DNA of 63,124 bases, counting the filler, from Olpidium bornovanus S191 (Eukaryota; Fungi; Olpidiomycota), in assembly GCA_017911155.1 (NCBI GenBank). It is 27 parts of 27 records of this genome, joined end to end, with 100 filler letters (N's around TTAATTAATTAA, not from the genome) between each part and the next. Parts side by side here need not be neighbours in the genome. Positions count along the whole stretch, not along the records: positions 60,553 to 61,670 come from JAEFCI010007507.1; 26 more parts are not named here. One strand, written 5' to 3'. This document shows positions 60,553-61,670 of this stretch, piece by piece (the stretch's first letter is position 1; every line of letters starts with the position of its first letter). Position numbers and translations under genes: made by a program. The notes under the pieces were generated by a model that worked only from the letters and a program-made list of their open reading frames with translations, ran no database searches and was not told where the DNA came from.

Positions 60553-61670
60553 CATGCTTCGGTGCAAGGTTCTTTACGTACAGCGTCCGTGAAGGCTCGC
60601 CGGGAGCATAATTTTTGTATGCGGCCGTGCCTTCCATTTCTGAAGAAGGCCAAAAAAAACCAGAAAGAAAGTAGCCGAGGAAAACGCGGCAGTGAGACGT
60701 TTTGCCGTCAGCGGCGCGTCGGTCACGCCCGGCAACCGCAACAGAAACAGTAGGCGTTGGCCTTGGGGAATTACAACGCGATCTTTCCCAATGTTGGCAA
60801 ACATCAAACTTACCCGCAGGGGACATCCGGTGGACCTCGAGCTCGGCGAGAGTTATGCACTCTTTGGTGAACTCCGGGTCAAATGCATACTCTTCGTCGC
60901 TGCGCGGTGGCTGGACGTCCAACTGTTCCCGGGGCTGAAGCTGCGCAGCACTCGTCGATTGCGGTTGCAATCCCAACCGCGCAACCTGTGCGCTCTGAGG
61001 CAAAGATCGGCGGGATTGCGATCCGTCCGCTTCCTTGCCCTGCGCAGGCTTCTCCGCGGAGGAAGGCAATGGCGGGATCCCGGTGCGTTCCGGCCGCTTC
61101 CCTTTCGTCTCACCGTTCGCCGGCGTGCCAATGGGCTCACCAACTCCAGCCATCTGTCCCGCCTCAGTCTGCGTCGCTGCGTCCACGCGCTCGCGCTCCT
61201 CTTTCTTCAGCCGCTTCTTCGGCGTGCTCACCGCGCCTGCCGTTTTCACGCAGGGGTCCCTTTGCGGCGCTGACTTTAAGCCCAGCGGCGCGGTCAGGTA
61301 GTTCGCGCCCGTCGCCAGCTTGGGGCGCAAATTCGCGGCCTCGTCCCCAGACTCCCACTCAGACTCTTCGCTAGAGAGGAGCTCGTCGCGCCGCCTCTTG
61401 CCGTAGCGCGAAGAGACTCGGACCTGCGTAAAGCGGAGAACTCCGTCAGGCCCAAACCACCGCCCACTTCCTCGCACGATAGCTAAATGCGCTCACAATA
61501 GCCGCGGCCGGCGTCGGTGCATCAAAAGGCGGCGGGAGGTTCATTTTGTTCATGAGATGTAAAACCTGAACATACAGCTTCGGCACAGCCGCTATCGCGT
61601 GGCCGATGTTTGTCAGGATCGAAGTCGTAGGCGCCGGGTAGTCATAGTAAAGGGTAGGTGGCGGCGGATA
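60553..61670 (-). CDS. RNPC3: U11/U12 snRNP 65-kDa protein (minor spliceosome), partial
   Basis: YPPPPTLYYDYPAPTTSILTNIGHAIAAVPKLYVQVLHLMNKMNLPPPF (61670-61520) matches the 65K-specific YPPP...IL.NI..AL..VPKFYVQVLHLMNKMNLP.PF block. After the linker come CITLAELEVHRMSPA | intron 60813-60640 | EMEGTAAYKNYAPGEPSRTLYVKNLAPKH, the start of the C-terminal RRM. Confidence 0.92.

Follow-up and report, generated by a model that had tools for sequence, protein, structure and literature searches.

The locus raises two questions: whether a short contig assigned to the fungus Olpidium bornovanus carries part of the gene for U11/U12-65K (RNPC3), and, if so, whether this organism has a working U12-dependent system. 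The contig occupies positions 60553 to 61670 of the window, i.e., the whole stretch of DNA that was analysed (63,124 nt, filler included), and all coordinates count along that window. A sequence-only reading had noticed two peptide blocks here and had assigned them to RNPC3, as opposed to RBM41, in an early-diverging fungus. The gene is almost certainly that of U11/U12-65K. In a fuller statement, the contig very probably represents the middle third of a single-copy nuclear U11/U12-65K gene from a GC-rich early-diverging fungus, most likely O. bornovanus.

The interval 60553-61670 is an entire Olpidium bornovanus contig of 1118 bp, with 0 N and 60% GC. The RNPC3 gene lies on its minus strand and extends past both contig ends. 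Both peptide blocks seen earlier were recovered on this strand, VPKLYVQVLHLMNKMNLPPPF at 61586..61524 in frame 0, counted from 61670, and YKNYAPGEPSRTLYVKNL at 60619..60566 in frame 1. The two different frames are linked through two GT-AG introns and a 203-codon middle exon. Our best reading of the minus strand consists of three predicted exons and two GT-AG introns, with the following features.

61497..61670, minus strand: predicted exon A, 58 codons, phase 0, 5′-truncated at the contig end; RNPC3-specific inter-RRM block
61524..61586, minus strand: core motif VPKLYVQVLHLMNKMNLPPPF, inside exon A
61424..61496, minus strand: predicted intron 1, 73 nt, GTGAGC...CTGAC...CAG, phase 0, U2-type
60814..61423, minus strand: predicted exon B, 203 codons and the leading base of a split codon; linker, for the most part of low complexity, that holds two conserved blocks
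61340..61402, minus strand: basic patch and acidic serine motif GKRRRDELLSSEESEWESGDE (with LLSSEESEWES), from the family alignment
60815..60862, minus strand: ECITLAELEVHRMSPA (CITLAELE...RM), the N-terminal extension ahead of the C-terminal RRM, from the family alignment
60640..60813, minus strand: predicted intron 2, 174 nt, GTAAGT...TTCAG, phase 1, U2-type, open in frame
60553..60639, minus strand: predicted exon C, 3′-truncated at the contig end; E followed by MEGTAAYKNYAPGEPSRTLYVKNLAPKH

The visible part of the gene amounts to about 290 codons (289) without a frameshift or stop, and its four conserved blocks are intact. These lie on one strand in the order found in RNPC3, i.e., VPKLYVQVLHLMNKMNLPPPF, the basic patch with LLSSEESEWES, CITLAELE...RM, and YKNYAPGEPSRTLYVKNL. 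In exon C (28 aa), the extension ends and the C-terminal RRM begins with its first β-strand (RNP2-type LYVKNL). The N-terminal RRM, expected upstream of 61670, and most of the C-terminal RRM (~70 residues) are off the contig.

Neither intron 1 nor intron 2 displays a U12-type 5′ splice site or branch site. The length of intron 2 is a multiple of three and it has no in-frame stop, which accounts for a 326-aa open frame that runs across it; retention would add 58 residues to the RRM extension without truncation. This openness may be due to chance in GC-rich DNA. On the plus strand there are two open reading frames antisense to exon B, of 193 aa (60692-61273) and 163 aa (60883-61374), neither with a Pfam family, and these are most likely antisense by-products of a GC-rich, stop-poor sequence. 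An Rfam scan of 60553-61670 gave no match at E ≤ 1. The USSE element RTATCCTT, with up to one mismatch allowed, is not present on either strand of 60553-61670; its expected site, the 3′ part of the gene, lies beyond the contig.

The deposited product of the contig, 'MAG: hypothetical protein BJ554DRAFT_653, partial', is 100% identical to exon B over 185 residues. Its gene model, also on the minus strand, starts at 61414 inside exon B and runs in frame 1 to 60860. It then removes a 25-nt 'intron', 60859..60835, thereby deleting the CITLAELE block, and continues in frame 2 from 60834 to 60577, reading across intron 2 and exon C until it reaches a TAA at 60576..60574. An intron of 25 nt is implausible, and the model is mis-spliced: exon A is omitted and exon C is out of frame. 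The deposited protein lacks three of the four conserved blocks, VPKLYVQVLHLMNKMNLPPPF and YKNYAPGEPSRTLYVKNL among them, and has no Pfam match. Because of the mis-spliced model, proteome-based presence/absence surveys would score Olpidium as having no 65K. In surveys of fragmented bins, translated DNA should be searched.

For the identification of the gene, each exon was searched on its own, and no joined protein was used in searches or trees. Pfam assigned no family to exons A, B or C, since the contig holds too short a stretch of the RRM. A word-index protein search, queried with the open frame that runs from exon B through intron 2 into exon C, recovered the deposited Olpidium protein alone and no other Olpidium fragment, a result of the length window and the low-complexity query. 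Since Pfam was blank and the word search returned only the sequence itself, an exhaustive HMMER search was done with exon A alone.

A phmmer search of exon A (58 aa) against 1.84e9 representative proteins gave 429 matches at E ≤ 1e-3, including 139 at E ≤ 1e-10; the best has E 6.4e-16 and 76% identity. The similarity is far beyond chance. Matches cover approximately residues 130-210 of proteins that are mostly 400-570 aa long. RRM_1 was present in all ten full-length matches scanned, with two matched stretches in eight of them. Those matches that carry a name are termed 'RNA-binding region-containing protein 3' or 'U11/U12 small nuclear ribonucleoprotein 65 kDa protein', and come from Aplysia, Anabrus, Patella, Quaeritorhiza, Rhizophagus irregularis, R. 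clarus, many plants, and JGI entries termed SNRNP65. Exon A is 69% identical to residues 135-192 of Aplysia RNPC3. When aligned with 39 RNPC3 proteins, it is free of gaps through PPPF, and gaps are found only in a variable 9-residue tail. It contains the inter-RRM motif ...VP-K/R-L/F-Y-x-QVLHLMNKMNLP-x-PF, which defines RNPC3 and has no counterpart in RBM41, and in the alignment VPKLYVQVLHLMNKMNLPPPF is nearly invariant among fungi, animals, plants and Pythium. The assignment to RNPC3 over RBM41, made earlier from the first peptide block, is thus borne out by exon A, which is the 65K block.

The remaining blocks agree with the same family. Exon C matches Aplysia RNPC3 at residues 457-483, adjoining the C-terminal RRM_1 domain (Pfam 477-551), and matches the Geosiphon homologue at 393-424, where RRM_1 covers 416-489; pairwise E values are 1e-6 to 2e-6 in both cases. 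Exons A and C are collinear on the Aplysia protein (135-192 and 457-483). For the C-terminal RRM plus its extension, the extension and the first strand LYVKNL align, and the remaining ~70 residues of the RRM are beyond the contig end. In exon B, GKRRRDELLSSEESEWESGDE matches a family motif that the alignment shows as KKRKKRDELLS-DESEIDSEDEE in Glomeromycota and SSEESE-ESD in animals. ECITLAELEVHRMSPA fits the pattern C-I-T/S-x-x-E-L-x-x-x-K/R-M/L of fungal and animal RNPC3, the Rhizophagus form being CITLEELNSNKMP. Among PDB chains, the best matches to exon C are 3EGN and 5OBN, both the C-terminal RRM of RBM40/RNPC3, at E 0.04, a value that reflects a 28-aa query too short for significance alone. 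A phmmer search of exon A against PDB chains gave chance matches only (E about 1, cytochrome P450 reductase); the 65K matches in PDB consist of C-terminal RRM chains only.

Some unusual proteins were seen among the matches. In one 522-aa protein (P0090), exon A is matched in seven separate stretches at 43% identity, which suggests a repeated proline-rich or LPPPF-like unit rather than RNPC3. Two RNPC3-like proteins, one of 867 aa from Lineus (P0170) and one of 808 aa from JGI (P0171), are far longer than the rest and show PF28441, a further Pfam family, next to RRM_1; gene fusion or the merging of gene models may explain them.

For comparison, the exons of the RNPC3 genes of Spizellomyces punctatus and Phycomyces blakesleeanus were mapped onto their own loci. 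Intron 2 is in phase 1 at alignment column 681 in Olpidium, and both fungi have a phase 1 intron at the same column 681, after residue 388 in Spizellomyces and after residue 335 in Phycomyces. No column-by-column alignment is possible around intron 1, where the comparison is by phase and by distance from PPPF. Intron 1 is in phase 0 and is situated 9 residues after PPPF in Olpidium; its counterparts are likewise in phase 0, 9 residues after PPPF in Spizellomyces (after residue 183) and 11 residues after it in Phycomyces (after residue 206). The shared phases and positions support both the splice model and orthology.

Spizellomyces and Phycomyces RNPC3 have a further intron in common, in phase 2 and directly before the start of the G-I/L-N-W/Y-x motif (column 243); the equivalent site in Olpidium is just past the contig end at 61670. 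At the Geosiphon pyriformis RNPC3 locus (L001:1001-2943), exact-match mapping that allowed GT/GC/AT-AG/AC introns of 30-1500 nt did not thread the annotated 498-aa product, as it did at the other two loci; the reason may be a short intron, an unusual splice site or an exon of very small size.

The source of the DNA has to be considered with care. The Olpidium assembly is a metagenome bin: zoospores were washed from cucumber roots grown in sand, under non-axenic conditions, and the DNA is of mixed origin (PMC7865070). From a raw assembly of 187 Mb, binning by tetramers and by similarity to fungal proteomes left 13,695 contigs (29 Mb), with a BUSCO score of 75% (PMC7865070). Contamination must therefore be weighed. 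A tree was made from 63 kept columns of exon A, with exon A and 39 hand-picked named homologues (21 fungi, 8 animals, 9 plants and Pythium); it left out the exon B and exon C rows and all unnamed matches. The tree puts exon A among the fungi, apart from both the plant clade (99/98) and a group of plants and animals (86/88). It is poorly resolved, with 20 of 36 inner forks open. The row nearest to exon A is the chytrid Quaeritorhiza (74% identity), and Pythium is at 54%.

The motif states are of the fungal type as well. Exon A has VPKLY and LPPPF, and the states VP-x-LY and LPPPF are common to all 21 fungi; animals and plants mostly have FY and LPAPF at these positions of the alignment. The coding GC is 62% and GC3 is 71%, and the loci of Geosiphon, Spizellomyces and Phycomyces have 37%, 49% and 33% GC, respectively. 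The RNPC3 genes most closely related to it are those of chytrids, Glomeromycota and Mucorales. Together, the tree, the motif states, the GC content and an identity of 76% at most point to a GC-rich early-diverging fungus without a sequenced close relative, which fits Olpidium. A plant, animal or oomycete origin is unlikely. The earlier placement in an early-diverging fungus agrees with these relatives and with the contig being that of O. bornovanus BJ554DRAFT_653.

The alternative that survives best, though we consider it quite improbable, is that the contig is a genuine RNPC3 fragment from some other eukaryote in the zoospore wash, i.e., a zoosporic or soil fungus or a protist, and was misbinned into Olpidium. 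The contig is only 1118 bp long, and with mixed DNA, tetramer binning of contigs >1 kb followed by the retention of fungal matches would not remove other fungi (PMC7865070). Against such an origin, the best identity in about 15 billion proteins is 76%, within a block where even plants, animals and fungi show 57-74% identity; a ceiling of 76% in so conserved a block argues that the source is not a sequenced genus. The gap between 62% coding GC (71% GC3) and the 33-49% GC at the loci of the closest homologues speaks against Glomeromycota or Mucorales. The tree (plant clade 99/98) excludes the plant host, as does GC, and Pythium, which has FY in place of the contig's LY, is only 54% identical. 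An origin in Olpidium itself, rather than in a co-sampled fungus, is highly probable.

As to function, 65K is specific to the minor spliceosome and links the two snRNPs of the U11/U12 di-snRNP, with its N-terminal half bound to U11-59K (PDCD7) and its C-terminal RRM to the U12 3′ stem-loop (PMC11039992). In the human protein, the N-terminal extension of this RRM is reported to be essential for RRM stability and for U12 binding (PMC11039992). A cryo-EM preprint on the U11 snRNP describes an interface, predicted with confidence by AlphaFold2, in which PDCD7 415-450 meets RNPC3 175-190, with ZMAT5, and the RNPC3 segment modelled there is 143-192 (10.1101/2023.12.22.573053). In the light of that modelling, VPKLYVQVLHLMNKMNLPPPF is probably a helix that docks on U11-59K (PDCD7) and ZMAT5. 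Residues 175-190 of human RNPC3 are what we take to be the core of the exon A motif. If this correspondence holds, the element that docks on U11 would be the most strongly conserved segment of the contig, and conservation of the motif in Olpidium would imply a conserved PDCD7 partner and, through it, a U11 snRNP. By homology with the human protein, the Olpidium product would connect the U12 and U11 snRNPs, the exon A motif serving as the docking site for U11-59K (PDCD7) and the C-terminal RRM with its extension (the end of exon B, exon C and the rest beyond the contig) as the part that binds the U12 snRNA 3′ stem-loop. A 65K protein is expected to bind U11-59K and the 3′ stem-loop of U12 (and U6atac), and to occur together with the minor snRNAs and U12-type introns. 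The analysis shows the sequence identity, block order, intron positions and fungal affinity; the binding partners of the Olpidium 65K and continued U12-type splicing are what we infer.

The Olpidium gene and human U11/U12-65K (RNPC3, also RBM40) share the same order of partner-binding motif, acidic serine motif, extension and start of the C-terminal RRM. They differ in the exon B linker, which in Olpidium is unrelated except for its two blocks, and of the Olpidium gene a fragment is visible, both the N-terminal RRM and the bulk of the C-terminal one lying off the contig. Animal RNPC3 is close over exon A, as the Aplysia identity shows, yet most animal proteins have FY and LPAPF as opposed to the fungal-type LY and LPPPF of Olpidium. 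The highest identities over exon A (62-74%) are those to the fungal orthologues compared, from Quaeritorhiza, Cladochytrium, Spizellomyces, Polychytrium, Piromyces, Geosiphon, Rhizophagus, Phycomyces and Umbelopsis. With these, the Olpidium protein has in common the fungal states of the motif as well as KRK-RDELLS-DESE, and with those of Spizellomyces and Phycomyces also both intron phases and the alignment column of intron 2. Unlike the Olpidium sequence (62% coding GC), the orthologous loci have 33-49% GC, and none is from a close relative. More distant are U1A and U2B'' (SNRPA and SNRPB2), RRM relatives of 65K in the major spliceosome (10.1101/2023.12.22.573053), which lack the PDCD7-binding motif and did not appear in any of the exon searches made here.

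It is plausible, and in our estimate probable, that Olpidium has a working U12-dependent system; this is a reasonable reading of the conserved gene. Minor snRNAs or introns are found in chytrids (Spizellomyces, Batrachochytrium), Allomyces, Neocallimastigomycetes and Mucorales, and are absent in Dikarya (PMC2396436, PMC10639083). In Glomeromycota, Rhizophagus has 205 minor introns, and in Zoopagomycota, Basidiobolus has 249 (PMC10639083, PMC2396436). Olpidium branches between zoosporic and terrestrial fungal groups (PMC7865070), with minor introns kept in chytrids on one side and in Zoopagomycota, Mucoromycota and Glomeromycota on the other (PMC10639083). Retention of 65K is predicted from this position between retaining lineages, and the finding thus fills a gap rather than being a surprise. 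The degree of surprise attached to it by the sequence-only reading was overrated, given the minor introns already known on both sides of Olpidium (PMC10639083). The same reading had suggested that the system may be undocumented for this lineage, which fits the literature searched: no paper pairing Olpidium with 'minor spliceosome' was found. Co-mentions of Olpidium with U12, and of Olpidiomycota with spliceosom*, appear unrelated as judged by titles and term counts (one occurrence per term), and Olpidium does not occur in the main text and one supplementary file of a pan-eukaryotic minor-intron survey (PMC10639083). As far as the literature searched shows, this would be the first RNPC3 from Olpidiomycota.

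Two other histories of the gene should be considered. It is very unlikely that an intact 65K is still kept under selection while the snRNAs and U12-type introns have been lost or drastically reduced. If this were true, a PDCD7-type docking motif and RRM would serve another RNP. Also very unlikely is a decaying or repurposed relic, in which U12-type introns and minor snRNAs are lost and the 65K gene is a pseudogene elsewhere in its sequence or has taken on another function. Loss of the minor spliceosome is frequent in fungi and elsewhere (PMC2396436, PMC10639083), just one third of the 65K gene is visible, and nothing else of the U12 system is seen on the contig. Yet all four conserved blocks are intact, no frameshift or stop interrupts the 289 codons, and the splice sites and conserved intron positions are preserved. 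The putative partner-binding motif is 66-74% identical to those of chytrids and animals, a level that speaks for ongoing selection on the same interaction, and lineages on both sides of Olpidium keep the minor-spliceosome system (PMC10639083).

That the locus is instead an RBM41 gene has a negligible probability, and RBM41 is excluded by exon A, which lies upstream of the RRM start on the same strand and is the 65K block. Like 65K, RBM41 works in the minor spliceosome and carries a C-terminal RRM of similar type, preceded by an N-terminal extension; the N-terminal parts of the two proteins are without similarity (PMC11039992), and RBM41 lacks the exon A motif. The helical N-terminal region that defines RBM41 upstream of its RRM is absent here, its place being taken by the exon with the 65K motif. 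Exon C also weakly matches RBM41 chains in PDB (2CPX, E 0.16; 9XU3_y, E 0.81), but the RBM40/RNPC3 chains rank above them, and exon A has no match to a full-length 413-aa RBM41 PDB chain even at E ≤ 10.

With the gene read as U11/U12-65K, its conservation adds the fungal phylum Olpidiomycota to those that keep parts of the minor spliceosome. This fits a picture in which the minor spliceosome was still present after the move onto land and disappeared at a later stage, particularly in Dikarya.
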